This document shows, one piece after another, positions 1,089 to 63,948 of a DNA stretch of 64,000 bases (its first letter is position 1; each line of letters starts with the position of its first letter). A program made the position numbers and the translations under genes. The notes below the pieces were generated by a model. That model saw only the letters and a program-made list of their open reading frames with translations. It searched no databases and was not told the DNA's origin. Location: the IMG/VR virus record IMGVR_UViG_3300021520_000002, positions 1-64,000 of that record. One strand, given 5' to 3'.

Positions 1089-1126
1089 ATATCGGCAAGA
1101 TCTTGTAATATAGATCTTGCCGATAT
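1089..1126. terminator. Hairpin built from paired TTGCCGAT motifs (15-bp perfect stem)
   Basis: ATATCGGCAAGATCT, 8-nt loop, AGATCTTGCCGATAT; intergenic, just after a stop codon. Confidence 0.7.
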
Positions 1127-1154
1127 TAAAAAGTTATAGTTTTTGGGGAGTGAT

Positions 1155-1544
1155 ATGAAAAGGATAATAACTGATTATAATTTTGTAGCATCAACAAAGA
1201 AAATAACATTTCCATTAGAAACAGGTTTTACTATAGATGGTCTTCTTTTAATTACAAATGTTACAGACAATATTATTATTTATAATTTTGCAGATCCTTT
1301 AACTGGGGCATCTGTAGATATAAGTGGTCTTATTATTACTCTTACATATAATACAACATCAATGAGTGATACTGATCATCTTTTAATTTATCATGATGAT
1401 GGATTACCTGCTGTTAATCAAATAACTGGTGAGAAAGGACGAGAAGCAAGTGAAGTAACTAGTAAAGAACAAATGGATATGTTTACTGATATATTAGAAG
1501 AATTGAGAGAGATTAAACTTATTTTAGCATCTAGTTTTGGATAA
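1155..1544 (+). CDS. Hypothetical virion-associated protein
   Basis: ATG at 1155 after GGGGAG. The LLLITNVTDNIIIYNFAD...LTYNTTSMSDTDHLLIY segment is typical of phage structural proteins. Confidence 0.55.
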   Translation: MKRIITDYNFVASTKKITFPLETGFTIDGLLLITNVTDNIIIYNFADPLTGASVDISGLIITLTYNTTSMSDTDHLLIYHDDGLPAVNQITGEKGREASEVTSKEQMDMFTDILEELREIKLILASSFG

Positions 1545-1562
1545 AAAGGAGGAAATGAGAAT

Positions 1563-2234
1563 ATGTTAGTTAAAATAGCTGGAAGGGTAAGAGGATTATT
1601 TGCCGGTAATTATCCCGACAATAGAGAAGATGAACAATTTCATTTAAATAATAGAGGTGATTGGCTTGTTGCACAAGCTTTACCTGAAAGAACTGAAATA
1701 GTTCGAATGGGAGATACTTGGCAAGTTGCAACAGCAAGTAATGCACCAACAGCTACACTTACTGCGTGGCCAACAACTGTAGCTGGACTTGGTATATGGA
1801 ATGGTGAACCACAAGGTGGTAAATGTTATATTATAGATTCTATAGCGGCAACAGAAATTATTGTTGATCAAACACAATCAAACTGTACTGCTTTATTTGT
1901 ATTAAATAATAAAACTCCAGTAGCCACACCAACACAAATTGGTGCTCAAACTATTAGATCAATGAGTGGAAGAACTTATGGTGGTAGATGTGTTATAGCT
2001 TTAACTGCAAACAATGTAACTGATGATGGTTGGTTTCCTGCTGGTAACTCTGTTGCTCCAGCTCCAGCTGTTGCTGGAAGTGGATGGAAACAAACTGATA
2101 TTCCAATAAATGGACTATATATCGTTCCTCCAGGTGGAATGTTTAGTGTTCAAGGAGTAAAAATTGCAAATCTTGCAGCCCAAATGATATACACAATTCG
2201 TTGGCATGAAGTCCAACTTATTTTAAAATCATAA
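1563..2234 (+). CDS. Tandem paralog 1 of 5 (GRVRGLFxGxYPxNREDE...RWHEVQ family), putative virion protein
   Basis: AAGGAGG RBS; clear similarity to the next four ORFs. Confidence 0.7.
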   Translation: MLVKIAGRVRGLFAGNYPDNREDEQFHLNNRGDWLVAQALPERTEIVRMGDTWQVATASNAPTATLTAWPTTVAGLGIWNGEPQGGKCYIIDSIAATEIIVDQTQSNCTALFVLNNKTPVATPTQIGAQTIRSMSGRTYGGRCVIALTANNVTDDGWFPAGNSVAPAPAVAGSGWKQTDIPINGLYIVPPGGMFSVQGVKIANLAAQMIYTIRWHEVQLILKS

Positions 2235-2251
2235 AGATGAGGTAGGAAACT

Positions 2252-2911
2252 ATGTTAATTAAAATAGCTGGAAGGGTAAGAGGATTTTTTGCCGGTAATT
2301 ATCCTGAAAATAAAGAAGATGAAGAATTTCATTTAAATACTAGAGGTGATATGCTTGTTGCACAAGGATTACCTGAAAGAGCTGAACTTACTAGATTAGG
2401 AGATTCTTGGACAGCTTCAAATACAACAGGGATTGCTGCTTTAACTGGTTGGCCAACAACAACAGCAGGATTTGGTATATGGAATGGTGAACCTTCTAAT
2501 GGTAAATGTTATGTTATAGATTCAGTTTCTTGTACAGATATTGTTGTTGATGCAACACAAGGTGATTGTACTGCTTTATTTGTTATGCTTAATAAACCAC
2601 CTGTTGCTCTACCTGCTGGTGGACAACTTATCCGTGGATTAAGTGGAAGAACTTATGGTGGTAGAGCATTAACAGTTTTAACAGCTGTTGCTAGAGTAGA
2701 TGAAGGTTGGTTTCCAGCAGGATCTTCAGCAACTGTTGGAGCAACTGTTGCTGGTTGTAACTTTAAACAACAATATGCTCCATTAAATGGAATGTATATT
2801 GTGCCTCCAGGTGGAATGTTCAGTGTTGCTGCTGCAAAAGTAGCTGCTGCTGCTGCACAAGTTGTATATACAATTTGTTGGCATGAAGTCCAACTTATTC
2901 TAAAATCATAA
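2252..2911 (+). CDS. Tandem paralog 2 of 5
   Basis: Same N- and C-terminal motifs as paralog 1. Confidence 0.7.
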   Translation: MLIKIAGRVRGFFAGNYPENKEDEEFHLNTRGDMLVAQGLPERAELTRLGDSWTASNTTGIAALTGWPTTTAGFGIWNGEPSNGKCYVIDSVSCTDIVVDATQGDCTALFVMLNKPPVALPAGGQLIRGLSGRTYGGRALTVLTAVARVDEGWFPAGSSATVGATVAGCNFKQQYAPLNGMYIVPPGGMFSVAAAKVAAAAAQVVYTICWHEVQLILKS

Positions 2912-2928
2912 AGATGAGGTAGGAAACT

Positions 2929-3603
2929 ATGTTAATTAAAATAGCTGGAAGAGTAAGAGGATTATTTACCGGTAATTATCCTGAAAATAGAGAAGATGAA
3001 GAGTCACATATAAATAGTAGAGGAGATAATTTATTAATTCAAGGATTACCGGAAAAAACTGAATTAGTTAGACATGGTGATTCATGGCAAGTTAGAAACA
3101 CTACTGCAGTTGCAGCTAGAACAGCACTCCCAACGACTAACCCAGGACTTGGAATTTATAATGGTGAACCAACTGGTGGTAAAAGTTATATTATAGATTC
3201 TGTAGCTTGTACAGAAATTGTTGTTGACGCAACACAATCAGATTGTACTGCTTTAATGGTTTGTATGAATAAACTTCCATTAGCAGTTATACCTTTAGCA
3301 AATTATGATGTTTTAGTTCCAAAATCATTAAGTGGAGGAGGAGCATATCCTGGTAAAGCAATATTTCAATTAATAGCTAGAACTTGTGTTAATGATGGTT
3401 GGTATGCTTGTGGAGATTCTGTACCGGTTGCTACAGCAGTTGCCGGTAGCGGATGGAAACAAACTGATGTCGATGTTAGAGGAATGTATATTGTGCCTCC
3501 AGGTGGCCAATTTAATGTTAATGCTGTTAAAGTAGCTGCAGCTGCCAGTCAATGTTCATATACAATTCGTTGGCATGAAGTTCTTATTTTATATAAAACA
3601 TAA
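2929..3603 (+). CDS. Tandem paralog 3 of 5
   Basis: Same motifs; upstream junction is identical to that of paralog 2. Confidence 0.7.
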   Translation: MLIKIAGRVRGLFTGNYPENREDEESHINSRGDNLLIQGLPEKTELVRHGDSWQVRNTTAVAARTALPTTNPGLGIYNGEPTGGKSYIIDSVACTEIVVDATQSDCTALMVCMNKLPLAVIPLANYDVLVPKSLSGGGAYPGKAIFQLIARTCVNDGWYACGDSVPVATAVAGSGWKQTDVDVRGMYIVPPGGQFNVNAVKVAAAASQCSYTIRWHEVLILYKT

Positions 3604-3618
3604 GTGAGGTATAAAAAC

Positions 3619-4281
3619 ATGTCTGAAATAGCAAGAATGTTAGGAAGGGTAAGAGGATTATTTGCCGGTAAATATCCTGAAAATAGAGAAGATGAACAAT
3701 TTCATCTGGACAATATGGGAAATAATATAGTTACTCAAGCACTTCCACCACTTACAGAAATAGTAAGACTTGGTGATTCATGGCAAGTTATGAGTGCAGC
3801 TTTTGCTGGAATAACAACTGTCGGTTCAACAGCAGGAATGTTTACTATGTGGAATGGTGAGGGTGGTAATGGAAAAATATATATTATAGATTCTATAGCT
3901 CTAACTAAAGTAGTTATTGATACTACACAATTAGAAGGTGGATTTTCTCTTCTTGTTCAGATTATTAGATCTATGGCAGCTCCAACTCATGTTGAATATA
4001 CACCATCTGGTTTAAGTGGTAAAAGATATGGTGGTCGTTGTCGAACTCTTGCGTCTTCAACTACAGTGGCTGCTAGTTGGGATATGGTTGGTTCCTCAGG
4101 AAATCCAGCGAGAGCTACTAATGGGTCTGGTTGGCAACAAGTTGATATAAATTTATTTGGAAAATATATACTTCGTCCTGGTGATGCTCTTACACTTCAA
4201 ATATCTGAAGTGACAGCCACAGCTGCAAAATTCAGATCAACAGTAAGATGGCATGAAGTTCAGATACCGTATGTAACATAA
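3619..4281 (+). CDS. Tandem paralog 4 of 5
   Basis: ATG at 3619 after GAGG (MSEIARMLGRVRG); closest to paralog 5. Confidence 0.7.
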   Translation: MSEIARMLGRVRGLFAGKYPENREDEQFHLDNMGNNIVTQALPPLTEIVRLGDSWQVMSAAFAGITTVGSTAGMFTMWNGEGGNGKIYIIDSIALTKVVIDTTQLEGGFSLLVQIIRSMAAPTHVEYTPSGLSGKRYGGRCRTLASSTTVAASWDMVGSSGNPARATNGSGWQQVDINLFGKYILRPGDALTLQISEVTATAAKFRSTVRWHEVQIPYVT

Positions 4282-4294
4282 GTGAGGAAAGAAC

Positions 4295-4957
4295 ATGGCT
4301 CAATTTGGAAAAATGTTAGGAAGAGTAAGAGGATTATTTACCGGTAATTATCCTGAAAATAGAGAAGATGAACAATTTCATGTAGACAATATGGGAAATA
4401 ATATAGTTACTCAAGCACTTCCACCACTTACTGAAATAGTAAGACTTGGTGATTCATGGCAGGTTATGGGAGTTGCATATGCAGCATTAACAGGTGTTGG
4501 TTCAACAGCAGGAAGATTAACTATATGGAATGGTGAACCCTCTAATGGAAAAATATATATTATAGATTCTATAGCTTATACTAAAATTATTATAGATACT
4601 ACACAATTAGAAGGTGGATTTTCTTGTTTGGTTCAAATTATTAAACAAATGACAATACCAACTGATGCTGCTTATGTACCAGCTGGTTTAAGTGGTAAAA
4701 GATATGGTGGTAGAATGAGAACTGTTGCTACTTCAACTACATTAGCTGCTAACTGGGATATGGTTGGTTCTTCAGGAAATCCAGCTGCTGTTATTGCTGG
4801 ATCAGCTTGGCAACAAGTTGATATAAATTTATTTGGAAAATATATACTTCGTCCTGGTGATGCTTTTGCAATTAATATATCAGAAGTAACAAATACAGCC
4901 TCAAAATTTAGAACAACAATAAGATGGCATGAAGTTCAGATACCGTATGTATTTTAG
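4295..4957 (+). CDS. Tandem paralog 5 of 5
   Basis: Long identical blocks with paralog 4 (DNMGNNIVTQALPPLTEIVRLGDSWQVM; WQQVDINLFGKYILRPGDA). Confidence 0.7.
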   Translation: MAQFGKMLGRVRGLFTGNYPENREDEQFHVDNMGNNIVTQALPPLTEIVRLGDSWQVMGVAYAALTGVGSTAGRLTIWNGEPSNGKIYIIDSIAYTKIIIDTTQLEGGFSCLVQIIKQMTIPTDAAYVPAGLSGKRYGGRMRTVATSTTLAANWDMVGSSGNPAAVIAGSAWQQVDINLFGKYILRPGDAFAINISEVTNTASKFRTTIRWHEVQIPYVF

Positions 4958-4966
4958 GAGTTTATT

Positions 4967-5167
4967 ATGAAACTATATGGTGTTGAAGGAGAAGGAAATT
5001 TTGTTCCAGAAATAGTCGCTTCAGTTCCAAGTTACACAGCTGCAGATGAAGGAAGATTAATTTATGTTACAGCGGATAAAAAATATTATTATGCGACAGA
5101 TGCTGCATGGATAGCTGTAGGTTCTGGAGCTGGAGCTGGAATATTAGAATCTCAAGTGTTTGGTTAA
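4967..5167 (+). CDS. Small hypothetical virion protein
   Basis: AGGAG RBS; GRLIYVTADKKYYY...W motif resembles short fibre domains. Confidence 0.5.
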   Translation: MKLYGVEGEGNFVPEIVASVPSYTAADEGRLIYVTADKKYYYATDAAWIAVGSGAGAGILESQVFG

Positions 5168-5176
5168 GGAGGTTAA

Positions 5177-5548
5177 ATGGCTGCTACTACATATACAAAA
5201 AATCATTTATCTAATTCAACAGATGGTAAAGGTATAAAAGTTGCTGGAACATCATCTGGGGGAGCAACAGATATTCATACTGCAAGTACTGCAAGTACTA
5301 CAACTGATTTTGATGAAGTATGGATATGGTGTGTTAATACATCTGCAAGCGCAATAAAACTTACAATAATGTGGGGTGGTACTGGTGATCCAGATGATTT
5401 TATTGAATATACAGTAGCTCCTGAAGATGGGTTAAAATGTATCATACCAGGATTAGTACTACAACATAGTTTAGCTATAAAAGCGTTTGCCGGTACAACT
5501 AATTTACTTGTTATACATGGTTTTGTTAATAGTATGGTTACAGCATAA
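5177..5548 (+). CDS. Hypothetical phage structural protein
   Basis: AAGGAGG RBS; beta-rich; DEVWIW...LTIxWGG...PGLVL...VIHGFVN pattern. Confidence 0.55.
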   Translation: MAATTYTKNHLSNSTDGKGIKVAGTSSGGATDIHTASTASTTTDFDEVWIWCVNTSASAIKLTIMWGGTGDPDDFIEYTVAPEDGLKCIIPGLVLQHSLAIKAFAGTTNLLVIHGFVNSMVTA

Positions 5549-5559
5549 GGATTAATATT

Positions 5560-6645
5560 ATGAGAACTGATTTTTTTAGAAATAGATTATTTATGGGTGA
5601 TATAAAACAGATGCAATCAGAGTTTTTAGTTCCAGAAATTTCTAGTTTAATTGGTTGGTATATTGGTGATGATCTATCGGCAAATTTTGCCGATGAAGAT
5701 GCTATCTTTGCTTGGAAAGATCATTATTCTGGAAATACAGCATATCAAGAAGATGATACTATTACTCAAAGACCTGTTTATAAAGCAAATATAATTAATG
5801 ATCATGGTGTTGCTAGATTTGATAATGCTACATATTCACAAAATTTAATACTTACTAATCCAAAACCATCAACAAAAACTGCTTTTATTGTTGCTAAGAA
5901 AACAGCCACAAGTAATAGTTGTTCAGTTCTTTATCAAACAAATACTAATGTTTTTAATTTCCCAACACCAACCAGTGGAAATGGACAATTATCAATCTCT
6001 GAAGGAACAGTTACTGTTTATACTCATATGGTGGATGCAACTGGATTACACATATTAACAGCAAGAAGAGTATATTCAGATACAGCTTGTGTTGCTAGAG
6101 TAGATGGTGTTGAAGGTTTTCCAGCTAATACAGCAAATTATTGGAATATATCACGTATAGGTTATAATGGTACACGAACTTCATGTTTTGATGGGGATAT
6201 TGCAGAAGTAATATTATTTTCAGATATATTATCTGATGCGAGTGTTATAACTATAGAATGTTATTTATCAAATAAATATGGAATTACTTTTACTGGAGAA
6301 ATGACTGAATCTGTATTAGTATCTGCTGACTGGACATTTGAAAATGCTGCTTGGTCAATAACCGCTGGTGTTTTAAGCTGTACAGGTTCAGGAAATTGTT
6401 ATCCTAATTATGCTGCTCAATCTCCTCCAAAAGTTGGATTAGGTTATGATATTGTTATAACAGTAACAGCTTGTTCTGGAACAATATATTTTTCTTATGC
6501 TGGTAATGCAACAACATTTGAGTTTTCATCAACTGGTACAAAAACATATACAAATATAATAACTTCTGATGCAACAACAATGTATTTAATGAGTATTGGT
6601 GGTACATGTTCTATATCAGCTATAAGTTGTAAAGAACATGTATAA
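5560..6645 (+). CDS. LamG/concanavalin-like domain protein with C-terminal carbohydrate-binding-like domain
   Basis: W-x-D-x-SGN, RPVYKANIIN and FDGDIAEVILF...IECYLSNKYGI signatures; C-terminus is homologous to 34025..34435. Confidence 0.6.
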   Translation: MRTDFFRNRLFMGDIKQMQSEFLVPEISSLIGWYIGDDLSANFADEDAIFAWKDHYSGNTAYQEDDTITQRPVYKANIINDHGVARFDNATYSQNLILTNPKPSTKTAFIVAKKTATSNSCSVLYQTNTNVFNFPTPTSGNGQLSISEGTVTVYTHMVDATGLHILTARRVYSDTACVARVDGVEGFPANTANYWNISRIGYNGTRTSCFDGDIAEVILFSDILSDASVITIECYLSNKYGITFTGEMTESVLVSADWTFENAAWSITAGVLSCTGSGNCYPNYAAQSPPKVGLGYDIVITVTACSGTIYFSYAGNATTFEFSSTGTKTYTNIITSDATTMYLMSIGGTCSISAISCKEHV

Positions 6646-6658
6646 TGGAGGTTCATAA

Positions 6659-7381
6659 ATGTATCAAAGAAATAGATATGAATCAGGACCTACACAATTA
6701 GGTAGACCATGGTTGCCAATAGATGTTCCTAATTGTAAATTATGGGTACCGGCACATTCATATATTGGTGCTGATAATGATGCTGTTGGTACTTGGCCAG
6801 ATTTAAGTGGAAATAATAATCATCCAACTCAAGGAACTACTACTAGAAAAGCAATATATAAAACAAATATTCTTAATGGTTATCCAATAATGAGAGCTGA
6901 TGGAACTACACGAATGTCATTCACAGAAATAACAGATATTCGAGCTTGTTATGCTGTTGTTAAAAAAGATGATGTTTCCAATTCAAGTACTTATATAACG
7001 ACAGATCAATCTAATACTGGATATATTCAGTGTTCTGATGAAAATCCTGGAAACACATCTCATCGTGGTAGAATAAGTGGACAAGATATTGAAGCTGGAC
7101 CAGTATTTACAGTCGCAAATACTTGGCATATTTCTGCGATGATATCATATGGTACATATAGAATAATGCGAGTTGATGGAGTAACAGTTACTTGGGCAGC
7201 GATAACTGGTGATCATCAGGTATATCAGGATCTTCTTTATGATTATGACGCTGGTTATTCTTATGATGGTGATATGGCAGAATGTATTATTTATACAACT
7301 GCTGATTTAACATTAAGAAACATGTATTTAATTGAAAGATATTTAGCTATTAAATATGGTTTAACTACTGGTTTGAAATAA
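6659..7381 (+). CDS. LamG/concanavalin-like domain protein
   Basis: LWV...VGTWPDLSGNNNH...YDGDMAECIIY...IERYLAIKYGL; paralogous to the preceding ORF. Confidence 0.6.
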   Translation: MYQRNRYESGPTQLGRPWLPIDVPNCKLWVPAHSYIGADNDAVGTWPDLSGNNNHPTQGTTTRKAIYKTNILNGYPIMRADGTTRMSFTEITDIRACYAVVKKDDVSNSSTYITTDQSNTGYIQCSDENPGNTSHRGRISGQDIEAGPVFTVANTWHISAMISYGTYRIMRVDGVTVTWAAITGDHQVYQDLLYDYDAGYSYDGDMAECIIYTTADLTLRNMYLIERYLAIKYGLTTGLK

Positions 7382-7412
7382 TTTTTAATTTAAGTTTATA
7401 GAGGTAATTACA

Positions 7413-7796
7413 ATGGCTGAAGATTATACAAAAATACTTCTAGAGTTAACAGATCGTCAGTTTAGAAGATATGATGAAACGATTGATGATGTTGCTCGAC
7501 TAGAAATTAAAACTCAAGATTTAGAAGTATCAATCAATAGATTTGATGTGGATTTAGATAATGAGAAAAAAGAACGTGTAAAAATAGAATTGTCAATTAA
7601 AGAGAATATAGACAATTTACATAAAGTTGATAAATCTTTATCAAATTTATCTGGAAGAGTTTGGGTGATAATTGGTTTTTTTATGGCTATTATTGGTTCA
7701 GCAACAGGAGTTCTTATTCATGTTTTTTCTAAAATTGGAGATATTTCTGGTAAAATTGGATGGTTAGAAGGATCACTTTCAAAAATTATTAAATAG
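7413..7796 (+). CDS. Coiled-coil protein with C-terminal transmembrane helix (possible lysis accessory)
   Basis: Heptad-rich N-terminus followed by VWVIIGFFMAIIGSATGVLIHVF. Confidence 0.5.
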   Translation: MAEDYTKILLELTDRQFRRYDETIDDVARLEIKTQDLEVSINRFDVDLDNEKKERVKIELSIKENIDNLHKVDKSLSNLSGRVWVIIGFFMAIIGSATGVLIHVFSKIGDISGKIGWLEGSLSKIIK

Positions 7797-7805
7797 AGGG
7801 TTAGA

Positions 7806-55359: not shown

Positions 55360-55737
55360 ATGTCGACCATGAAAGAAAAATTAAAATCATTTAAAGATTC
55401 CATATCTAGAAATAAAGGTAATATAGAAAAGGTAGCGGCAGGTTCAGCTGGAGCAGCTGGGGTTGTTGGTGGATTGGGAACAGCAAAAGGAGCACAAATA
55501 TATCATGATGCATATGATGAAACTTTTAAAAGTTATAAAGAAAGTCCACAATATAAAATTTTAAAAAATATAGATCCTATAGGTACAGCAAAAATGGAAG
55601 GTAATATTACATTTGAAAAGGGAATGGTAAAAGGAGTTAGAGATCTTGGTCTTGCAGGAGCTGGTATTGGTGGAGCAGTTTTAGCTGGAGTTATAGCTAA
55701 ACACTATCATGATAAGAAAAAGAAGAAATCCAAATAA
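55360..55737 (+). CDS. Glycine-zipper-like membrane protein with Lys tail
   Basis: AAGSAGAAGVVGGLG; LGLAGAGIGGAVLAGVIAKHYHDKKKKKSK. Confidence 0.55.
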   Translation: MSTMKEKLKSFKDSISRNKGNIEKVAAGSAGAAGVVGGLGTAKGAQIYHDAYDETFKSYKESPQYKILKNIDPIGTAKMEGNITFEKGMVKGVRDLGLAGAGIGGAVLAGVIAKHYHDKKKKKSK

Positions 55738-55745
55738 GGTGAAAA

Positions 55746-56825: not shown

Positions 56826-56837
56826 GGAGTTATATTT

Positions 56838-57251
56838 ATGATATCGATTATAGCTGAAGTTAGTAAAAGTTTTAATATGAGAGATAAATTATATAAAGCT
56901 AGTAATGAATATAAAGATGCTGCTAAAAATTCTTCAATTTTTGCTCCGTTTAAAAAAGCACAATTATATGCAGCATCAGTAAGAGCTGATAAATTAGGAA
57001 AACTTATCAATTCAAAAATAAATGATGAACATTTAGTTTATGATAAAAGTGATATAAATTTGGCGAAAGTATTTCAACATCCAAAACGGGAATTAATTGA
57101 TAGAATTAATAATCAACCAGAAGTTAAAGAAATGATAAATAGAGCTGAAGGTGGTAAATCAAAAGTTCCTGAAAATTTAAAAAATTTATCATCAGCTTTA
57201 AAACAAACTGGAATGGGTATAAGAAATAAAATTTTTAAATCTTTTAAATAA
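56838..57251 (+). CDS. MIS-leader family protein
   Basis: Starts MISIIAE. Confidence 0.6.
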   Translation: MISIIAEVSKSFNMRDKLYKASNEYKDAAKNSSIFAPFKKAQLYAASVRADKLGKLINSKINDEHLVYDKSDINLAKVFQHPKRELIDRINNQPEVKEMINRAEGGKSKVPENLKNLSSALKQTGMGIRNKIFKSFK

Positions 57252-57269
57252 TTTTTTAGCGAGTTAAAT

Positions 57270-57776
57270 ATGATATCAATAACAGAAGTTCAGAAAGGGT
57301 ATTCCGGATATAAAATGGAACATGTGGGATCTGGTGTTGGAAAAATAATTGGAGGAACAGTTCCTGGTCCAGCAGCTGTAATAACAATTCCACTTGGTCA
57401 TTATATAGGAAAAAATGTTCCTAAAGATCCAGAGAAAGATATTGATGAATCTAAGAGAACTCATAGAGTTGCAGCTATTGCTGATGAAAGACTTAGAGCC
57501 AAAAGAATGTTAAAACATGCAGCTGTAGGCGCATCTATTGGTGCTGCTGTAGGGGCAACAATAGGAAAGAAAAAAGGAGCAGTTATTGGTGGAGGAGTAG
57601 GATCAGTTCTTGGATTAATTTCTGCTGGTGCAGTAGGTGGTTGGAGAGGTGCTGAAAAGCTTGGTTATGGACCAATTGGTAAAACTTCTGCCGCTCTTCC
57701 TTTTCCAGGAGAATATACTGGATTGTTAGCTCCTTCAGGAATAAAAATAGATGCTGTTCCGGAGGAAAAGAAATAA
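57270..57776 (+). CDS. MIS-leader glycine-zipper protein
   Basis: MISITE; AAVGASIGAAVGATIGKKKGAVIGGGVGSVLGLISAGAVGG. Confidence 0.6.
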   Translation: MISITEVQKGYSGYKMEHVGSGVGKIIGGTVPGPAAVITIPLGHYIGKNVPKDPEKDIDESKRTHRVAAIADERLRAKRMLKHAAVGASIGAAVGATIGKKKGAVIGGGVGSVLGLISAGAVGGWRGAEKLGYGPIGKTSAALPFPGEYTGLLAPSGIKIDAVPEEKK

Positions 57777-57796
57777 AATAAACAATAGAGGTAACA

Positions 57797-58447
57797 ATGT
57801 ACATCAACTACGACAGTACATGTAAGATAATAGCAGAAGGAGAATTGGATGAATTAATAAACAATTTTGATCGTCTTGATAGTACTGCTGATAGACCAGC
57901 AATACAAAATAAATTTACTATCAATATGAGACCGCAAGGAATTATTGTTTATGATTCTTATAATAACCCATTTTTTCCAATTAGACCTAGACCAAGAATA
58001 GATGATGCTAAAATGAATCTATTTGAAGTTTATAGGCGTACAAGAGAATTGTATGAAGCTTTTGCGCCGATAATTCTTCCTTGGCATTATATAATTGAAT
58101 TTATTAACGATCGTTATTTTGTTTTCGCGACAAGACCAATTGATATGAAATTTCCAGCTTCAAATCAAGATGTAACTGATGATAGACAAAAATTCTGGGA
58201 TGATGCAACAAAAGATTTTATGAAAGATAATTTATTTGATATTAGAGAATGTATTCATATTCTCATCCTTGGTGATTCTAATATTGATGTTTATACCAAG
58301 AAATTTTATGAGTTATTAGGACGTATTTGTGTTGTACCATTTGTAAGATATTTTAAATTGCCGGAAGGTATAGGTCAACGCATTTTTTATTTAAACATGG
58401 GGATTAAATTCCATGGTCAATTAATAATGAAGTTTATTAGGAGGTAG
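57797..58447 (+). CDS. Hypothetical protein (weak resemblance to an amidase-like fold)
   Basis: PWHYIIE...CIHILILGD is reminiscent of Amidase_2; catalytic residues are not evident. Confidence 0.4.
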   Translation: MYINYDSTCKIIAEGELDELINNFDRLDSTADRPAIQNKFTINMRPQGIIVYDSYNNPFFPIRPRPRIDDAKMNLFEVYRRTRELYEAFAPIILPWHYIIEFINDRYFVFATRPIDMKFPASNQDVTDDRQKFWDDATKDFMKDNLFDIRECIHILILGDSNIDVYTKKFYELLGRICVVPFVRYFKLPEGIGQRIFYLNMGIKFHGQLIMKFIRR

Positions 58448-58448
58448 A

Positions 58449-58637
58449 ATGATTAGTATTGTTGAAACAAAATTTGGTGTAGGTTTATCAGAACAATTAA
58501 GAAGAATTAATCCATTAAATCTTCCAGGCATTACTAAACTTGAACCTATTGATTTAAGTAAAAGATTAAATTCTCAAAATAGAGATTTAAATAATTTAAA
58601 AATGACATTATCATTGTTTAAACAAAAATCTAAATAA
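58449..58637 (+). CDS. MIS-leader family small protein
   Basis: Starts MISIVETKFGV. Confidence 0.55.
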   Translation: MISIVETKFGVGLSEQLRRINPLNLPGITKLEPIDLSKRLNSQNRDLNNLKMTLSLFKQKSK

Positions 58638-58662
58638 TCAAAAAACTAAAGGAGATTTTACT

Positions 58663-58866
58663 ATGAAGACTAACGAAGTGAAGTTTGGCGTAGCAGTTGT
58701 AGCATCTATTTATGAAGTTGAAAATGCAATATCTACAGAAGGTGCATCTGATGTAACGACTCCAGCATGTATTGCAAAAGCTATTCAGAGTGTTCTTGGT
58801 GTTCAGGGTTCTGATTCAGTTCAGGAAGCAAAAGCAACTGGTGGAGATGTGACAGCTGATAGGTAA
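58663..58866 (+). CDS. Small hypothetical protein (NE-x-KFG N-terminus)
   Basis: Starts MKTNEVKFGV; AAGGAG RBS. Confidence 0.5.
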   Translation: MKTNEVKFGVAVVASIYEVENAISTEGASDVTTPACIAKAIQSVLGVQGSDSVQEAKATGGDVTADR

Positions 58867-58899
58867 TTTTTGCCGATAAAAATAGTAAATGGAGGTTTT

Positions 58900-59061
58900 A
58901 TGATTTCAATAATGGAATCATTTTTTTGGAATTATTCAAACTGGGGAGAGAAAACCCCAAAATCAGTTTATACACTTACAGATGAAGAAGCTAATAAAAA
59001 AGATACTGAGATCAATAAAGATAATTTAATAATTCGTGATGAAAACATTACAGTTACATAA
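58900..59061 (+). CDS. MIS-leader family small protein
   Basis: ATG at 58900 after GGAGG; starts MISIME. Confidence 0.55.
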   Translation: MISIMESFFWNYSNWGEKTPKSVYTLTDEEANKKDTEINKDNLIIRDENITVT

Positions 59062-59070
59062 GAGGTTATT

Positions 59071-59883
59071 ATGATAAACAATGAAACTGCATTTGGAGCA
59101 GAATTAGCTATTGAGCTTAAAATGTTAATTGAGATTGGTGGTCAAAAAGGTGCTCTTGAAGACGCCTTAACACATGTAAGAAAAGAGAAAGCAGCATTAA
59201 GTCAAGAAAAAGGTGGTATTGGTTTTTGGAAAGGTCATTTTACAAAAGAAGGAAAAGAACATAAAAGGAAACTTGATGATGCTTTAGATCTTGTAAAGAA
59301 AAAAGAACATGATTATAAATCAGTTAATCGTGAAGTTAAGATGCATGATCGACCTTTAGCAAAAGCTAATAGATGGTTGTCTGGTTTTCTTGGACGTAAA
59401 GATGCAGCGGCACAATATGATGCTAAAGATGCAGATTTACATAAAAGAATTCAGAATATAAAAACTGGACAAGAGTATACTGATAGAGCTAATCTTGTAC
59501 AAAAAAATTTAAAAGATTGGAAAGAAGAAGCTCCTGGAATTTCAAACAAGGCTAAAGATGCAGCTGAAAAACTTAAAAATACTAGAATTGAAAATGCTGG
59601 AATTAAACCTAATTATACACCACCAGTCGATACAACTCCTCCAAAATTTGAAAAGGAAGATACATCTTCACTTTTGAAAAATTTTGGAACAAAGATTGTT
59701 GATAAGTTTAAACCAGCTTCAGAAACTCCAAAATCTGCTCCTGTAGATGTTCCTAAACCAGCTGCTGCTCCTGTAGAAGCACCAAAAGTTGAGGCTCCAG
59801 CATCAACGACAAATCAAAATTATAAAGCACCATCTCGGATAATTACCAAACCAATGTTTAGTCATCTTAGAGCAAAAGGATAA
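59071..59883 (+). CDS. Basic helical protein with Pro-rich tail
   Basis: Starts MINNETAFG. Confidence 0.55.
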   Translation: MINNETAFGAELAIELKMLIEIGGQKGALEDALTHVRKEKAALSQEKGGIGFWKGHFTKEGKEHKRKLDDALDLVKKKEHDYKSVNREVKMHDRPLAKANRWLSGFLGRKDAAAQYDAKDADLHKRIQNIKTGQEYTDRANLVQKNLKDWKEEAPGISNKAKDAAEKLKNTRIENAGIKPNYTPPVDTTPPKFEKEDTSSLLKNFGTKIVDKFKPASETPKSAPVDVPKPAAAPVEAPKVEAPASTTNQNYKAPSRIITKPMFSHLRAKG

Positions 59884-59966
59884 ACGGAAGAGTAACATTT
59901 TAATGTTGCTTCTAAAAATATATAGAAATTATACAATTTGAAAGCTTTTTAAAAAAAGAATAAATT

Positions 59967-61256
59967 GTGAGGATTAAAATGTTTTTAGAGGCGTTTGGAG
60001 TGGATGCATCAAAAACTGATGTAAGTTTAGATATATCTTATAAGCTTTTATTTTATCATATTAATGATGAATTACTAAAAGCTTCGGGTGACAGTAATAT
60101 TATTATTGCCACTAAGTTAATTGAGAGGTATTGGAAAGATTTAGATAGTAATCTTGGTGATACAATTCAAGATAGACATCCTTTAGTTAAAGGATTATAT
60201 TTTTTGTATCAAACAGGTAATGCTCTAAATAGATTCAATGAAAACGATTTAAAAATATCTAAAATTAAATTTCGTTCTAAAGTTTTATTTCCGTATTTAA
60301 TTTATATTCTTCAACAATATTTACCTAAGGTTCGACAATTTTTACAATATATTGTTTGGTCATCTTATGAAGAGATGAAAAAGAAATCGGCAGGTGCTGT
60401 CAATTTCTATGTTAATTCATTATATCTTGATCAAGATGTAATTAAACATGAGGTATTATTAGAATTTTTAGGTAATGCAATGATTAAATTTAGTCCATTA
60501 GATGTAGGAAATGTTAATGCATTTTATAAGAAAATCTTCAGAAATATTTTTAATTTTTATTTTAAGTATAAACAAAGTAATCAACCAATTTGGTCTAATT
60601 TTTGGAGTATTGAAAATGCTATAACATCAGTTAATACATCGGCAAGATTATCTGTTTATCGGGATGTTTTATATGGTCTCGAAGTTGAAAAACTTTATAA
60701 AGATTCACCAATGTTATCTCAGTTAGGTTATAATTATAAAATTTTTAGAAATTTAATTATCAATAATGAAATTCAAGATATTTATATGTCATTAGATCCA
60801 TGTAGTGCTGTTGGTATTTCCAATAACGAATATAAATTGCTTAAAATTTATGATGATGATATTATGAATGAGCGTCTTATAGACAAAATTCGCAAACTAC
60901 CAACAGTATTTAAATTACTTAAATGTATTCATATTGTTAATCCAAAAGGTAAACCACATAATGAAATGGTTATCAAACCAGAATTATTAAAATTTGCCGT
61001 TAGAGATGAATTAGTACATCCATTTAGAAATTTCTTTAATGATAATTATTTATTACCTATTTTAGATAAGGTTGCTGAAAATTTTGTAAACTCTTTATTG
61101 ATGGGTGATTATATAAATTTAATAACGTTGGCACCCATAAGAATTAATCAAATTAGTTTTGTAGAACAGATACGAAAATTTGTACGCATCTGTTTAGATG
61201 AAATGTCCAACGTTGGAGGCGAAATAGAAGATGTTAGAATCAGAGCAATTCGATAA
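59967..61256 (+). CDS. Hypothetical protein
   Basis: 429-aa ORF; true start may be ATG at 59979. Confidence 0.6.
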   Translation: MRIKMFLEAFGVDASKTDVSLDISYKLLFYHINDELLKASGDSNIIIATKLIERYWKDLDSNLGDTIQDRHPLVKGLYFLYQTGNALNRFNENDLKISKIKFRSKVLFPYLIYILQQYLPKVRQFLQYIVWSSYEEMKKKSAGAVNFYVNSLYLDQDVIKHEVLLEFLGNAMIKFSPLDVGNVNAFYKKIFRNIFNFYFKYKQSNQPIWSNFWSIENAITSVNTSARLSVYRDVLYGLEVEKLYKDSPMLSQLGYNYKIFRNLIINNEIQDIYMSLDPCSAVGISNNEYKLLKIYDDDIMNERLIDKIRKLPTVFKLLKCIHIVNPKGKPHNEMVIKPELLKFAVRDELVHPFRNFFNDNYLLPILDKVAENFVNSLLMGDYINLITLAPIRINQISFVEQIRKFVRICLDEMSNVGGEIEDVRIRAIR

Positions 61257-61713
61257 ACAAGAAATATCATCTAAATTTGAAGATCAAAGATCACAATTAG
61301 ATGCACAAATTACCCAACTTGGGAGTAGAATTTTATCTTTACAAAAACATATTATATCTTTAGAACATGCTAATAGTGTCCTTGATCAACTTGCAAAAAA
61401 TGAAAAAGATGGAACTAAAATAAAACAATATTATGGTGCAATGAAACAAAATATTGAATTATTAGCAAAACTTTATGAAGTTATTAAAGAATATGAAGGA
61501 ATAAAATTTAAATATTATAAAGAAATAGATGATATTATGATTAGTAAATATAGAATGATTTCAGTCGATATTAAGAAACTTGAAGAAAGACTTAATGGTG
61601 CTGATGATGTGTTTGGTTTCTTTGAAAGATTAACAGAAGCTTTAAAAAATTCTGGGTCTAAAAGGGAGCTAGTTAAAAGCGAATTACAAAGTGATCCAGA
61701 TTATAAGTTGTAG
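61231..61713 (+). CDS. Coiled-coil hypothetical protein
   Basis: Heptad pattern; GGAGG upstream. Confidence 0.55.
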   Translation: MLESEQFDKQEISSKFEDQRSQLDAQITQLGSRILSLQKHIISLEHANSVLDQLAKNEKDGTKIKQYYGAMKQNIELLAKLYEVIKEYEGIKFKYYKEIDDIMISKYRMISVDIKKLEERLNGADDVFGFFERLTEALKNSGSKRELVKSELQSDPDYKL

Positions 61714-61724
61714 GAGGAATTAAT

Positions 61725-62105
61725 ATGATATCTATTATAAGACCGGGGGCATTTTCTGGAGGGGAATTTCCTGATAATGATAGAGCTATTCCACTCGGTG
61801 GTAAAATAGTTAGAATAATAAGAATAAGAGCAATTCCGATAAAGTCTGATGAAGAAGAGGTAAAAGATATGGTAGATGAAAAATTAAATCAGATTCCAGA
61901 TGAAGAATTAAATCAGGAACCAGATGAGAATGAATTTGATGATGAAATAGAACAAATTTCGGATGATGAATTGGATGAAATTCCAGATGAAGATGAAGAA
62001 TTAGATGAACTTCCTGAATTTGATGTTGATGAATTAGATGAAGATGATGCTGAAGATTTTGAAGATGAAGAAGAAGATTTTGAAGGAATGGAAGACGATA
62101 TATGA
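61725..62105 (+). CDS. Highly acidic protein with MISII start
   Basis: C-terminal two-thirds dominated by D/E with (Q/E)IPDEEL repeats. Confidence 0.6.
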   Translation: MISIIRPGAFSGGEFPDNDRAIPLGGKIVRIIRIRAIPIKSDEEEVKDMVDEKLNQIPDEELNQEPDENEFDDEIEQISDDELDEIPDEDEELDELPEFDVDELDEDDAEDFEDEEEDFEGMEDDI

Positions 62106-62287
62106 TTAAGGAAGATCAGAAAATAGATTTAGATCAGTTAATTAATGAATTTGTACAAATGGTGGATGAAAACAGTCCTGAAGCAAGTACTGATCCAAAT
62201 GTTAAACGTGTAAAAGTAATTAGAGCACAGGGTGGTTGTGCTTGTGGAAATTGTTTTGATGAAGAAGACTTTGGTGAAACTCAATGA
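62102..62287 (+). CDS. Small hypothetical protein with CxCxxC
   Basis: GGCACGNC. Confidence 0.45.
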   Translation: MIKEDQKIDLDQLINEFVQMVDENSPEASTDPNVKRVKVIRAQGGCACGNCFDEEDFGETQ

Positions 62288-62514
62288 AATTAACAAAATT
62301 TGATCAAGAAATAAGTCAAAGAATTTCTAGTTCTATAATTCATGAAAAATATGATATATATGAAATTGAACAAAAAATTAAAAATAGTATAAAAGATTTA
62401 GTTAATGGATGGTATAAATTTACAATTAATAAATTAATTGATAAATTTTCTATTGAATTTACTTATTGTCCTACTGAATTTAGTATGAAAACAATTTTAA
62501 TCATTATCAAATAG
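62284..62514 (+). CDS. Small hypothetical protein
   Basis: ATGA overlap with the previous ORF. Confidence 0.4.
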   Translation: MKLTKFDQEISQRISSSIIHEKYDIYEIEQKIKNSIKDLVNGWYKFTINKLIDKFSIEFTYCPTEFSMKTILIIIK

Positions 62515-62544
62515 TTAAAATTTTTTGGAGGCGTAAAATAAATA

Positions 62545-63948
62545 ATGGCAAGAAAAAAAGAAGATACAAATAGAAGCGCAACTAATAGTTTTGATTCATC
62601 TTCATTTGAAGATGCATCAACAGAACAAGCTGAAAAGTTAGGAACAGCATTTGAAAGTATAATTACAAGTAAGTATGGTTTTGCAAGAGCACCGGAACCA
62701 TATCTAACTCCATTTGGTATTCAGCATCTTGATACATTAATTGGTGGAGGAATAACATCTTCTGCTCCAGTTATGTTAACATCAACACCTGAAACTGGAA
62801 AGAGTACTTTAGCATTTCAACTTTCATCTATATTTCAAATATTGTATCCTAATTCAATGGTTGTTTATTTAGATATTGAAACAGCTGCTAATAAATCAAA
62901 TAAGAATAATGCAATGTCAAGAGTTAATATATTTAAAATTGATGAGAAGAGATTTAGATATGAACCTTTGGTTATTAATATAAATCAGTTGTTTGAATTG
63001 ATTGAACAATTATGTGCTGTTAAACAGTTGTTTGAAGAGAAATCTCAGAAAGAGTTTAAAGTGTTAATTATTTGGGATAGTATAGCGGCAACTCCATCTT
63101 CTAAAGTTGAAGATGCAGAAGATCCGAATAAAATTATTGGTGTTAAAGCACGTCAGCTTACATTCGCTCTCGAGAAATATTTGCCGATGATGGCATTCAA
63201 TAGAATAACATTTCTAGCTATTGATCAGGTTCGTGCAAATCTTAATATTGATCCTTATGCTCAAAAAGAAAAATCTGTTGGAGTATTTAAAGACTATCGT
63301 GCCGCTACATCTATATCTGCATTAAATCATAGAGTTGCTCAATGGTTATTTTTATCCAGAAAAGCAGCTATTACACCAGATGATGGATTAGGCATTAATG
63401 GTTGGTATATGAGTATGTATGTTGAGAAGAATAAAATTGCTCCATCTCAGGAAGCTATTACTTGTGTTTTTGATAAGAGAAATGGTCTTCATAAATTTTG
63501 GAGTGAGTATACATTTCTTAGTGAGATGATGCCATCTGAAAAGAAGTATTATAAAACTGAAGATAAAATACCATTTCCATTATCTATTAAAAAATCTGGT
63601 CCTCAAGTATATCTTGAATTTATAGATCCAACATCAGGAAGTGTTGCATACACATCTGAAAAAATGTATAAGAAGAATATGAATAAAGCTTATATTGAAG
63701 ATAGTACTTTTAGACAAGCTTTTGATTATGTAACAAGTATGGCTGTTGAACTTAGAATTAGACAAGGACTTTTTAGGGAAAGTGAAACTGCTATTAATAT
63801 AAGTTCTGAAGTAATTGAAGAATTTGAAGCTGAAAGTCTTTCAGATGATAATTTTGATAAACCAAAAATTTCAGTTGCTGAACAAGTTGCCGCTACAATA
63901 CCTTCTATCGATGGAGAACAAGAAGCTACTTATGAATCAATATTTTAA
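62545..63948 (+). CDS. uvsX: RecA/UvsX-like recombinase
   Basis: LDTLIGGGI, Walker A STPETGKST, YLDIE, Walker B IIWDSIAA, IDQVR, KNKIAP. Confidence 0.8.
   Translation: MARKKEDTNRSATNSFDSSSFEDASTEQAEKLGTAFESIITSKYGFARAPEPYLTPFGIQHLDTLIGGGITSSAPVMLTSTPETGKSTLAFQLSSIFQILYPNSMVVYLDIETAANKSNKNNAMSRVNIFKIDEKRFRYEPLVININQLFELIEQLCAVKQLFEEKSQKEFKVLIIWDSIAATPSSKVEDAEDPNKIIGVKARQLTFALEKYLPMMAFNRITFLAIDQVRANLNIDPYAQKEKSVGVFKDYRAATSISALNHRVAQWLFLSRKAAITPDDGLGINGWYMSMYVEKNKIAPSQEAITCVFDKRNGLHKFWSEYTFLSEMMPSEKKYYKTEDKIPFPLSIKKSGPQVYLEFIDPTSGSVAYTSEKMYKKNMNKAYIEDSTFRQAFDYVTSMAVELRIRQGLFRESETAINISSEVIEEFEAESLSDDNFDKPKISVAEQVAATIPSIDGEQEATYESIF

Follow-up and report, generated by a model that had tools for sequence, protein, structure and literature searches.

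An Eight-Base DNA Word Iterated About Once per Kilobase in a Clade of Uncultured Jumbo Phages

A clade of uncultured jumbo phages keeps the 8-base word TTGCCGVT at about one copy per kilobase, where it is written into genes with rare codons and paired head-to-head as the stems of intrinsic terminators, a layout that resembles that of bacterial DNA-uptake sequences. The full word is YTTGCCGVTA, with T excluded at V, and no reader protein has been found for it, thus its recognition by a phage or host protein is inferred. The window analyzed here is a stretch of 64,000 bases, corresponding to bases 1-64000 of a 285.6-kb jumbo phage with its own multisubunit RNA polymerases.

Enrichment of the Word

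The over-representation described in an earlier note was confirmed. TTGCCG/CGGCAA occurs 62 times in the window (37 on the + strand and 25 on the - strand), against the approximately 61 copies counted by hand in the note, and every example coordinate given there is correct. Of these copies, 57 extend to TTGCCGNT, whereas the looser core TGCCGNT occurs 77 times. Dinucleotide-preserving shuffles give an expectation of 4.2 +/- 2.0 copies and a second-order Markov model gives 2.8, under which TTGCCG is the most over-represented hexamer (z = 35). A synonymous-codon shuffle within genes gives 17.2 +/- 2.3 copies, and a shuffle that keeps amino acids, codon usage, and exact dinucleotide counts gives 20.9 +/- 2.8, with a maximum of 27; both figures include about 10-12 copies in unshuffled sequence (intergenic or minus-strand genes), about 12 in the case of the strictest shuffle. 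Thus, the disappearance of the enrichment under a codon- and dinucleotide-preserving null, which had been set beforehand as the refuting outcome, was not observed. The scarcity of CpG that had been claimed also holds, with 552 occurrences observed against 1590 expected.

However, one correction is needed. The word had been described as sitting in different reading frames, but the frames are far from random, since 55 of 68 coding TGCCGNT copies fall in two phase classes, sense xTT|GCC|GVT and antisense A|BCG|GCA|A. Moreover, the note missed that 10 copies form five inverted pairs, namely four perfect intergenic hairpins and one pair overlapping the end of a gene; a sixth pair (5678/5687) lies too close together for that count, and there is, in addition, one degenerate intergenic hairpin.

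Single Copies and Inverted Pairs

The word takes two forms, single copies inside genes, which lie on either strand and use rare Ala GCC or NCG codons, and inverted pairs, which form intergenic hairpins that are intrinsic terminators. The features of the window are as follows.

1600..63894 (both strands): about 50 dispersed single copies of YTTGCCGVT(A) inside genes. TTGCCG (+) starts at 1600, 2289, 3440, 3662, 5487, 7867, 10170, 12270, 13319, 14548, 20105, 20289, 22365, 22749, 24192, 28809, 30349, 31515, 31668, 39404, 46707, 49473, 51306, 52552, 54600, 58358, 58870, 60994, 63181, and 63887; CGGCAA (-) starts at 1846, 8057, 9560, 10081, 16392, 17135, 18457, 21891, 26115, 26193, 27852, 28537, 45354, 50802, 53231, 54110, 54984, 60640, and 63086.
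1089..1126 (+): intergenic hairpin made of an inverted pair (CGGCAA 1093, TTGCCG 1117) with a GATCT/AGATC inner stem, between a stop codon at 1080 and the next gene at 1143.
5676..5694 (+): closely spaced inverted pair (5678/5687) inside a virion structural gene.
14067..14093 (+): inverted pair (14069/14086) overlapping the last 60 nt of the gene that ends at 14130.
19188..19745 (+): one of four HNH_3 + AP2-domain endonuclease paralogs of this phage, given as context only and not shown to belong to the system; a speculative candidate reader.
34445..34476 (+): intergenic hairpin (inverted pair at 34447/34469, one G.U wobble on the sense strand), 9 nt after a stop codon and 34 nt before the start of a collagen-like fibre gene.
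36847..36879 (+): intergenic hairpin (inverted pair at 36849/36872), flagged as terminator-like by the consensus scan.
38569..38603 (+): degenerate intergenic hairpin, in which the 5' arm reads CAGCAA (one mismatch) and the 3' arm is TTGCCG at 38596.
45506..45542 (no strand assigned): hairpin of 15 base pairs between two convergent gene ends (45493 on +, 45545 on -), followed on the minus strand by a T tract; it is the intrinsic terminator of the ATPase/DUF2201 operon and is positionally conserved in all relatives.

Within genes, GCC represents 5% of Ala codons overall but 31% in the TT_G context, and 44 of 255 protein-compatible positions (17%) carry the word despite the use of codons of such low frequency. 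The spacing of the copies is Poisson-like, and single copies have no hidden inverted partner and no extra local folding. The same flanks (A at -5, T at -2, Y at -1, V then T then A/R, with T excluded at V) appear in sense copies, antisense copies, and hairpin arms, which points to one recognizer. The arms of terminator hairpins, which work at the RNA level and were also missed in the earlier note, account for about 16% of the copies in the window and 30% genome-wide.

Distribution across the Genome and in Relatives

The word is the top hexamer across the genome, where its density is about 0.9 per kb on both transcription arms with no strong polarity (82 sense to 57 antisense), and also in relatives with at least 60% identity in a neighbouring AAA-type ATPase, albeit with exceptions. 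Without ascertainment, most relatives at or above this identity contain 0.6-1.4 copies per kb and most relatives at 51% or below contain 0.1-0.6 per kb, the exceptions being the relatives labelled L156 and L173 (low), L169 (not significant), and L193 (raised, without the flanks). Codon shuffles confirm the enrichment in eight relatives, although in the 60-66% clade it is only 2-3 fold. Copies are conserved 49% at 79% nucleotide identity, against 23% for hexamers with four G/C and 14% for CG-containing hexamers (p = 1e-4), and yet they turn over, since about half are lineage-specific.

At one orthologous junction, every relative has a hairpin plus T tract, but only the enriched clade builds its stem from the word, whereas more distant relatives have unrelated stems there and lack the enrichment. 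Moreover, one sister lineage, L169, uses the dialect TYGCCG, enriching TCGCCG as well (14 against 2.4 expected), and has CTCGCCGG terminator stems.

Alternative Explanations

Several other readings were considered, none of which seems likely. The first is that the word could be the target of a DNA base-modifying enzyme: the phage makes preQ0, and a DNA guanine transglycosylase (DpdA-type) would insert a 7-deazaguanine at a G of TTGCCGVT or its complement, giving a low-level, site-specific epigenetic mark. The genome encodes QueC, QueD (PTPS), a QueE-like radical-SAM protein, FolE2, and a YhhQ/Vut_1 precursor transporter, the same gene set as the 7-deazaguanine cluster of phage CAjan, and one modified G per copy would be about 480 per million nucleotides, within the range reported for low-level phage modifications (212-3790 per million; PMC10516641). 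Sequence motifs of DpdA have been described (PMC7544227); they include GGC, which lies in the complement CGGCAA, but known DpdA motifs are only 2-3 bases long. However, no DpdA/TGT was found in the Pfam tables of about 250 kb or by phmmer with the CAjan DpdA, although distant DpdA3/4 types could be missed. Besides, a modification target by itself predicts no enrichment and, if the modification protects against a nuclease that reads the word, avoidance would be expected.

About equally unlikely are two further readings. In one of them, the word would be bound by the AP2 domains of the HNH-AP2 endonucleases, which would nick at or near it to give 3' ends that prime recombination-dependent replication, clamp loading, or packaging, like the site-specific nicks of T5-type phages. 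There are four paralogs at 58-66% identity in this genome and homologs in two clade-A relatives, and none of the four genes contains the word. AP2 domains bind short GC-rich words as monomers, such as the GCC box GCCGCC and the DRE element RCCGAC, which resemble GCCGV, though this is an analogy with the AP2 domains of plants, the specificity of bacterial and phage ones being unknown. Nevertheless, HNH-AP2 genes are common selfish homing endonucleases with long, unique targets, zero copies in 2.4 kb is not significant, the genes have no hairpins or word copies next to them, and nick or cut sites tend to be lost by repair, not gained. In the other reading, only the terminator hairpins would be functional, and the coding copies would be a neutral by-product of short ectopic conversion from the many hairpin arms or of a context-specific repair bias of the VSP type. 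Coding copies resemble the wider arm consensus AGATCTTGCCGATA at -5, -2, -1, and +8, hairpin variants with identical loops recur at least 10 times, so arms do spread, and coding enrichment and word-built terminators appear in the same clade. However, coding copies outnumber arm copies 2-5 fold, are conserved above matched controls, and have no partial partner and no extended homology beyond about 14 nt; conversion tracts this short are not known, and single-mismatch neighbours are not depleted.

It is less likely still that the word is a host-specified signal, such as a DNA uptake sequence of a naturally competent host mirrored in its phages. Its anatomy matches DUS/USS, but a hairpin scan of 185,579 species' genomes found word-rich loci only in mis-binned contigs of this phage family, and no bacterial locus showed true enrichment. 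Moreover, the phage looks virulent, with its own replication and transcription machinery, so it does not share the transformation-driven drive of the host, and the same core word recurs in phages from lakes, digesters, and sludge. Similarly doubtful is a recognition site on the lagging-strand template for the phage primase, setting Okazaki fragment starts about every 1-2 kb per strand. The density matches prokaryotic Okazaki fragment length, sites on both strands are needed if forks run both ways, the phage has a primase-like gene, and an 8-nt primase site is reported for the NrS-1 PrimPol (PMC8718748); however, DnaG/T7-type primases read trinucleotides, the NrS-1 8-mer proved dispensable, spacing is random, not regular, and this reading gives no reason for the word to sit in terminator stems.

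Finally, a promoter element, for example the -10 box of a sigma-28-type (FliA/SigD) promoter, whose consensus (T)GCCGATAA the word matches, is already largely refuted: although intergenic arms read TTGCCGATAA/T, identical to many E. coli FliA -10 regions (PMC4203485), and many FliA sites in E. coli are intragenic and in either orientation, there is no TAAA -35 element at the right spacing, 42% of copies have C, G, or T in place of the essential A, the ribosome-binding site starts as little as 5 nt after the word in some copies, one copy sits between convergent gene ends, where no promoter is needed, a different, strictly gene-oriented word, ATATAGAAAT(A/T)AT, occupies promoter positions, and no sigma factor turned up in the roughly 250 kb whose genes were examined in this phage, which has its own RNA polymerases.

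Comparison with Known Iterated Words

The DNA uptake sequences (DUS of Neisseriaceae and USS of Pasteurellaceae) share with this word a short asymmetric sequence at about 1 per kb on both strands, coding copies restricted to a few reading frames, intergenic copies in inverted pairs that form terminator stems, lineage dialects, and copies that are conserved yet turn over (10.1101/2025.10.24.684340; PMC3630211; PMC2397512). However, the carrier here is a lineage of large, apparently virulent phages, not a competent bacterium, no ComP/ComN-type receptor or competence machinery is involved as far as can be seen, the word is 8 bases plus weak flanks rather than 9-12, and no host genome with the word was found. 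Chi sites are likewise words of 5-8 bases over-represented in a genome, embedded in genes, and read by a DNA-end-processing enzyme as a self signal, and some lambdoid phages accumulate them to an extreme degree (PMC3784561). Nevertheless, Chi is strongly polarized and, in lambdoids, concentrated between ori and cos in phages that lack recombinases, whereas this word is spread evenly, is only 59:41 by strand, occurs in a phage with its own recombinase, and is built into terminators.

The stoperators of mycobacteriophage L5 and cluster A phages (reported by Brown et al. 1997) are asymmetric words of about 13 bp iterated 20-30 times across a phage genome and read by one phage protein, but they lie mostly in short intergenic gaps in one orientation relative to transcription and serve a prophage repressor, whereas the present word is mostly inside genes, in both orientations, about 10 times more numerous per genome, and has no known repressor. 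The repeated intergenic stem-loop cassettes of phages (PeSL cassettes of T4-type phages; SAS/ESAS of cluster K mycobacteriophages) are sequence-conserved stem-loops repeated between genes, often next to a promoter, and here a word-hairpin plus T tract is followed about 25 nt later by ATATAGAAAT; however, those elements are not known to have a counterpart inside coding sequence, whereas here two to five times as many copies are single words within genes. HIP1 (GCGATCGC) of cyanobacteria and their phages is also an octamer at about 1 per kb that survives codon-aware nulls, but it is a palindrome tied to a methyltransferase context, whereas this word is asymmetric and has a degenerate position. 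Among the analogues proposed in the earlier note, parS/NAP-type sites and HIP1 are poorer than DNA uptake sequences, and Chi is also a better one.

A Putative Recognition Word Co-opted into Terminators

The interpretation offered in the earlier note, a recognition site for a phage or host protein, is partly supported: its core holds, in that the word is selected at the DNA level and is not a protein or composition effect, as it survives codon- and dinucleotide-preserving nulls, lies on both strands, shares flanking preferences in both orientations, is conserved above background in relatives, and is clade-specific with a dialect, but its recognition by a protein remains an inference. The present analysis establishes DNA-level selection, the two forms of the word, the terminator role of the pairs, the clade specificity, and the dialect, although the sequence alone does not separate selection for density from a neutral recombination-linked drive; by contrast, that a protein reads the word, which protein it is, and what it does are inferred. 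The general statement, a selected protein-recognition word co-opted into terminators, is considered likely, whereas the mechanism proposed below is put forward only tentatively.

The best guess for the reader is a helicase-nuclease or recombination machine that would stop degrading DNA and start recombining when it meets the word (Chi-like), in a phage that replicates with its own UvsX-type recombinase; a packaging or compaction protein would fit the same anatomy. Nevertheless, no AddAB/RecBCD-type gene appears in the roughly 250 kb examined, Chi words are normally strongly polarized, and lambdoid phages that encode their own recombinase avoid Chi (PMC3784561), while this phage encodes UvsX. 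In this view, YTTGCCGVTA would be a lineage-specific DNA recognition word, kept on both strands by selection, or by a recombination-linked drive, for its density, and it would work as a self-mark (Chi-like or uptake-sequence-like) read by a sequence-specific DNA-processing protein. Within genes, the word is fitted in with rare synonymous codons wherever the protein allows and, between genes, it is placed as inverted pairs that double as the stems of intrinsic terminators, as DNA uptake sequences are in Neisseria and Haemophilus.

Occurrence and Definition of the Word

The hexamer TTGCCG/CGGCAA occurs 62 times in the window, with 37 copies on the plus strand and 25 on the minus strand, and it is found at all of the coordinates listed in the earlier note, whose observation of a densely iterated word therefore held. 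Among these copies, 57 continue as TTGCCGNT, whereas the looser core TGCCGNT occurs 77 times. The word is sharply defined, since single-base variants at positions 2-4 are 4 to 60 times rarer and T is nearly excluded at the degenerate position V (A 29, C 18, G 12, T 3). The flanks are also biased, with A at -5, T at -2, Y at -1, and A/R at +8. The expected number of copies is 4.2 from dinucleotide shuffles and 2.8 from a second-order Markov model, under which this is the top hexamer at z = 35, and it rises to 17.2 when synonymous codons are shuffled within genes and to 20.9 +/- 2.8 (maximum 27) when amino acids, codon usage, and exact dinucleotide counts are all kept. The last two figures contain about 10-12 copies in unshuffled sequence. 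Disappearance of the enrichment under a codon- and dinucleotide-preserving null had been set beforehand as grounds for rejecting the finding, and the enrichment did not disappear. Maximal-order Markov statistics were uninformative, because the sub-words are themselves mostly derived from the motif. CpG is depleted to 0.35 of expectation, and the other strongly enriched words come from collagen-like repeats in fibre genes.

Nearly all genes in the window lie on the plus strand, and 96% of the window is coding. Of the 62 copies, 52 are in genes, with 30 sense and 21 antisense in plus-strand genes. Coding copies of the looser core TGCCGNT are not frame-random: 29 are sense xTT-GCC-GVT and 26 are antisense A-BCG-GCA-A (hyphens marking codon boundaries), and a few encode Leu-Pro or Gly-Lys. 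GCC represents 5% of alanine codons overall but 31% in the TT_G context and, of 255 positions whose amino acids allow TTGCCGVT, 44 carry it. Sense and antisense copies share the same flanks in motif orientation, which points to one recogniser acting on DNA. However, not every copy is an independent event, since three of five tandem paralogs of about 220 aa (window 1563-4957) carry the word at the same position in a conserved WKGKRI(I/F)FAGNYP stretch.

The spacing of the copies is random, with a coefficient of variation of the gaps of 1.00, and the regular arrangement that a primase- or nucleosome-like role would suggest was rejected. Hidden hairpins at single copies were likewise rejected, as degenerate inverted partners occur at chance level and the 60-nt folding energy equals that of the control. 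The copies do not cluster at gene starts or ends. Ten copies form five inverted pairs, which are listed here together with two related arrangements:

1089-1126, perfect intergenic hairpin
34445-34476, perfect intergenic hairpin
36847-36879, perfect intergenic hairpin
45506-45542, perfect intergenic hairpin
14067-14093, inverted pair overlapping the end of a gene
38569-38603, degenerate hairpin
5676-5694, closely spaced pair inside a gene

The intergenic hairpins start 7-12 nt after a stop codon, or 17 nt in the case of the degenerate one, and end 16-37 nt before the next start codon.

Genome Context

The source contig, IMGVR_UViG_3300021520_000002, comprises 285,572 bp, the window covers its bases 1-64000, and near-identical assemblies are held at NCBI and ENA. 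It belongs to a myovirus-like jumbo phage with baseplate, sheath, and fibre genes and a UvsX-like recombinase. The phage encodes several split multisubunit RNA polymerase beta/beta' genes, a family B DNA polymerase, an NAD-dependent ligase, ribonucleotide reductase, a topoisomerase, SSBs, helicases, PDDEXK nucleases, and a primase-like protein. No close cultured relatives were found, the best UvsX matches being Herelleviridae at about 25% identity, and the only DNA match is a 400-nt stretch that is 73% identical to a 735-kb uncultured megaphage (LR756501). No tRNAs that could have helped to infer the host were found in the window.

Over the 182 kb that could be placed on the contig, the word occurs 162 times (0.89 per kb) at even density on both transcription arms. 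The strand split is 82 sense to 57 antisense, with the same ratio on both arms, and there are 24 inverted pairs, which hold 30% of the copies. Gene orientation and GC skew switch sign at about 110 kb and about 264 kb of the contig, splitting the genome into a plus arm with the structural genes and a minus arm with replication, transcription, and small genes.

Further features of the genome are given below, where identifiers beginning with L denote loci retrieved in the course of the analysis:

Window 7806-10565, a 919-aa protein made almost entirely of PAS domains (at least six), unusual for a phage structural-gene region
Window 14148-15839 and 21461-25276, large proteins combining glycosyltransferase (GT1, GT9) and methyltransferase domains, next to fibre genes, which may glycosylate virion proteins
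Window 30042-38553, four fibre-like proteins with long collagen triple-helix repeats, whose GGAACAAGTGG-type repeats cause the other top-ranking k-mers, and in whose region the 400-nt megaphage match is placed
Window 19188-19745, L215:1444-2106 and 3200-3760, and L217:12544-13176, four paralogous HNH_3 + AP2-domain endonuclease genes at 58-66% identity, two of which lie near a UDG-domain protein and a separate DNA polymerase B fragment
L011:4220-6190, L017:4428-6416, L207:1-4327, L209:14661-15704, and L212:2851-4041, several split beta- and beta'-like multisubunit RNA polymerase genes, suggesting two phage RNA polymerases as in phiKZ/AR9-type jumbo phages
Source contig about 171.6-174 kb (L207:8593-11309), 201.5-202.3 kb (L013:1497-2345), and 233.4-234.2 kb (L017:801-1592), a complete preQ0 (7-deazaguanine precursor) pathway, with QueC, QueD/PTPS, a QueE-like radical-SAM protein, FolE2, and a YhhQ/Vut_1 transporter
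L003:1814-2566 (contig 117646-118398), a metallo-beta-lactamase-fold protein that matches the anti-Pycsar Apyc1 family (E = 2.5e-28), a likely counter-defence gene

Inverted Pairs and Transcription Terminators

The hairpin at 45506-45542 lies between convergent gene ends, after a DUF2201/VWA gene, and has a 15-bp stem and a TTCTTTTTTA tail on the minus strand. Through the adjacent ATPase gene, 67 loci were retrieved and, at that same junction, every relative with a large enough locus has a strong hairpin followed by a T tract, across 38-100% ATPase identity. The stem is built from the word in almost all relatives of at least 60% identity, with the exceptions of locus L187, which has an unrelated stem, and locus L172, which has only a partial 3' arm, whereas more distant clades use unrelated GC-rich stems. 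Base pairing is maintained by compensatory change, since the inner stems covary (GATCT/AGATC, GAGCT/AGCTC, GACCT/AGGTC, GCTCT/AGAGC, and A-T against C-G at the V position), and 68 distinct inner stem-and-loop sequences were seen. G.U wobbles sit mostly on the sense strand on both genome arms, but a sense-strand C-to-T bias and copying of one hairpin variant could give the same pattern, so that the claim of RNA structure rests on the compensatory pairs instead. The consensus terminator scan ranks these hairpins as the best terminator-like sites, although some plus-arm copies have weak T tracts. No Rfam family matched the window at gathering score.

On the minus arm, the hairpins are followed by a T tract, ATAATTTTTATTTT, and about 25 nt further on there is often a different word, ATATAGAAAT(A/T)AT, which always points with the genes and looks like the real promoter. 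This second conserved word consists of a T-rich stretch followed by TTC-ATATAGAAAT(A/T)ATA and is found in the window at 48175 (-), 51058 (+), and 59920 (+), with about 25 copies in 182 kb of the source contig, for example at contig 263389-264229. It sits in intergenic regions, 20-40 nt before the ribosome-binding site, is commonest on the minus (small-gene) arm, and four promoter-like words cluster at the 264-kb divergence point. It is probably the promoter for one of the phage's own RNA polymerases, and no sigma factor was seen in the roughly 250 kb whose genes were examined.

Distribution among Relatives

In the loci chosen by the ATPase gene, which were not ascertained by the word, TTGCCG runs at 0.6-1.4 per kb and is among the top hexamers in most relatives of at least 60% identity. 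In the 60-66% clade, the extended form is TCTTGCCG, with 142 copies observed against 3.5 expected. In most relatives at 51% identity or below, the density is 0.1-0.6 per kb, with no comparable word. However, there are exceptions in both directions, as L156 (66%) and L173 (62%) are low at 0.22-0.24 per kb and L169 (62%) is not significant under codon shuffles whereas, among the distant relatives, L193 (40%) has 15 copies against a shuffle mean of 5.5, but without the flanks. Codon shuffles confirm the excess in eight relatives. Lineage L169 enriches TCGCCG (14 against 2.4 expected) alongside TTGCCG and has terminators with CTCGCCGG stems, which constitutes a dialect of the form TYGCCG, and flank preferences differ between subclades.

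Against a relative at 79% nucleotide identity, 49% of the copies are conserved, in comparison with 33% for all hexamers, 23% for hexamers with four G/C, and 14% for CG-containing hexamers (p = 1e-4). About half of the copies are lineage-specific, and some gains involve amino-acid changes.

A scan of 185,579 species' genomes for the hairpin pattern, aimed at finding the host, found many copies only in contigs that turned out to be relatives of this phage binned into MAGs of five different phyla, in addition to single chance hits in unrelated bacteria, and no bacterial locus among the hits is truly word-rich. These contigs of the phage family (loci L039-L136, for example JAGVVH01, CAZFOG01, CAZRCF010000001.1, JALNZW01, and CAYSWG010000124.1) sit in public MAGs labelled Bacteroidetes, Nitrospiraceae, Lentimicrobiaceae (one 256.7-kb contig), Patescibacteria, and Geobacteraceae, a binning contamination that the word and hairpin reveal. 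In practice, the word is a compact signature for recognising this phage family.

Comparison with Known Genome Words and Candidate Readers

The layout of the word is that of bacterial DNA uptake sequences (DUS/USS), with about 1 copy per kb on both strands beyond coding and composition effects, frame-biased coding copies, inverted repeats in terminators, and dialects (10.1101/2025.10.24.684340), although the word has 8 bases plus flanks instead of the 9-12 bases of an uptake sequence. With the host unidentified, the scan hits gave no support to a competent host with a word-rich genome and a word-specific receptor (ComP/ComN), since the enriched loci are phage contigs. The word also recalls the Chi enrichment of some lambdoid phages (PMC3784561), being short and over-represented, but it lacks the strong strand polarity of Chi, although a circularly permuted genome might not need polarity. 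No RecBCD/AddAB-type helicase-nuclease gene appears in the roughly 250 kb of phage examined, and the host is unidentified.

The earlier note had proposed a recognition site for a phage or host protein, and this interpretation is partly supported. The sequence evidence establishes that a DNA-level word is under selection, that it is used singly in genes and in pairs as terminator stems, that it is restricted to one phage clade, and that its sequence drifts between lineages; that a protein reads the word, by whatever mechanism, and that many copies are advantageous are inferences. A self-mark for a DNA-end-processing or recombination machine (Chi-like) is tentatively favoured, with packaging or compaction as variants, since the function must be density-dependent, orientation-tolerant, and useful anywhere in the genome. 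Weak strand polarity, the phage's own recombinase, and the absence of any identified reader speak against this view. The same core in phages from different habitats, with drifting flanks, suggests that the reader travels with the phage, but a host factor is not excluded.

A site for 7-deazaguanine modification could also be considered. The preQ0 pathway and the precursor transporter are the same set as the DNA-modification cluster of phage CAjan, so the phage DNA is probably 7-deazaguanine-modified, and one modified G per word would fall within reported low-level modification densities (PMC10516641). However, no DNA guanine transglycosylase was found in the Pfam tables or by phmmer with the CAjan DpdA, in searches that left out about 12% of the genome and could miss distant DpdA3/4 types, which need profile or fold searches. 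A 223-aa orphan between QueC and YhhQ gave nothing in PHROGs or the ESM Atlas. A modification target alone does not explain the enrichment. The four HNH-AP2 endonuclease paralogs are putative readers by analogy only, since AP2 domains of plants bind GCC-box-type words, and no word copies lie in or beside these genes.

Stoperator-type repressor sites, which lie mainly between genes in one orientation relative to transcription, do not correspond to a word with most copies in genes and in both orientations. A sigma-70 or sigma-28 (FliA/SigD) promoter role was rejected. The sigma-28 -10 element GCCGATAA is matched by the intergenic arms and by 27 of 62 copies, whereas 16 copies have GCCGCT, 11 GCCGGT, and 3 GCCGTT, and a literature search for the word itself returned only primers and the E. 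coli FliA promoter table. Despite the resemblance of TTGCCGATAA to the sigma-28 -10 box, the position matrix shows no TAAA signal of a -35 element 15 nt upstream, copies lie on both strands, the ribosome-binding site is as close as 5 nt, one copy lies at convergent gene ends, and the separate word ATATAGAAAT(A/T)AT looks like the real promoter.

Significance of the Word for the Phage Lineage

The word is a real, strongly supported, and unusual feature, and it belongs to the known class of selected genome words, here in a virus and with a reader still to be identified. Over-represented genome words with a known reader (Chi, DUS/USS, KOPS) have taught much about how cells tell self DNA from foreign DNA, whereas comparable cases in viruses are few and far less dense. 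A bolder possibility, doubtful on present evidence but not excluded, is that a virus lineage has evolved its own uptake-sequence-like genome word, in which case a phage-encoded reader would recognise YTTGCCGVTA on phage DNA to mark it as self for replication priming, recombination, packaging, or protection. Candidates would be an AP2-domain nickase, a long-motif 7-deazaguanine transglycosylase, or a packaging or compaction protein, and the specificity of the reader would drift into dialects together with the word. This would be the first such system described in a virus, and it would come with a built-in set of natural specificity variants. The jumbo-phage lineage pays a measurable coding cost, in the form of rare codons and amino-acid changes between relatives, to keep about 250-280 copies of one word, and it also offers natural controls, in sister clades without the word and one with a dialect, which make the question of what reads the word, and what for, directly testable.
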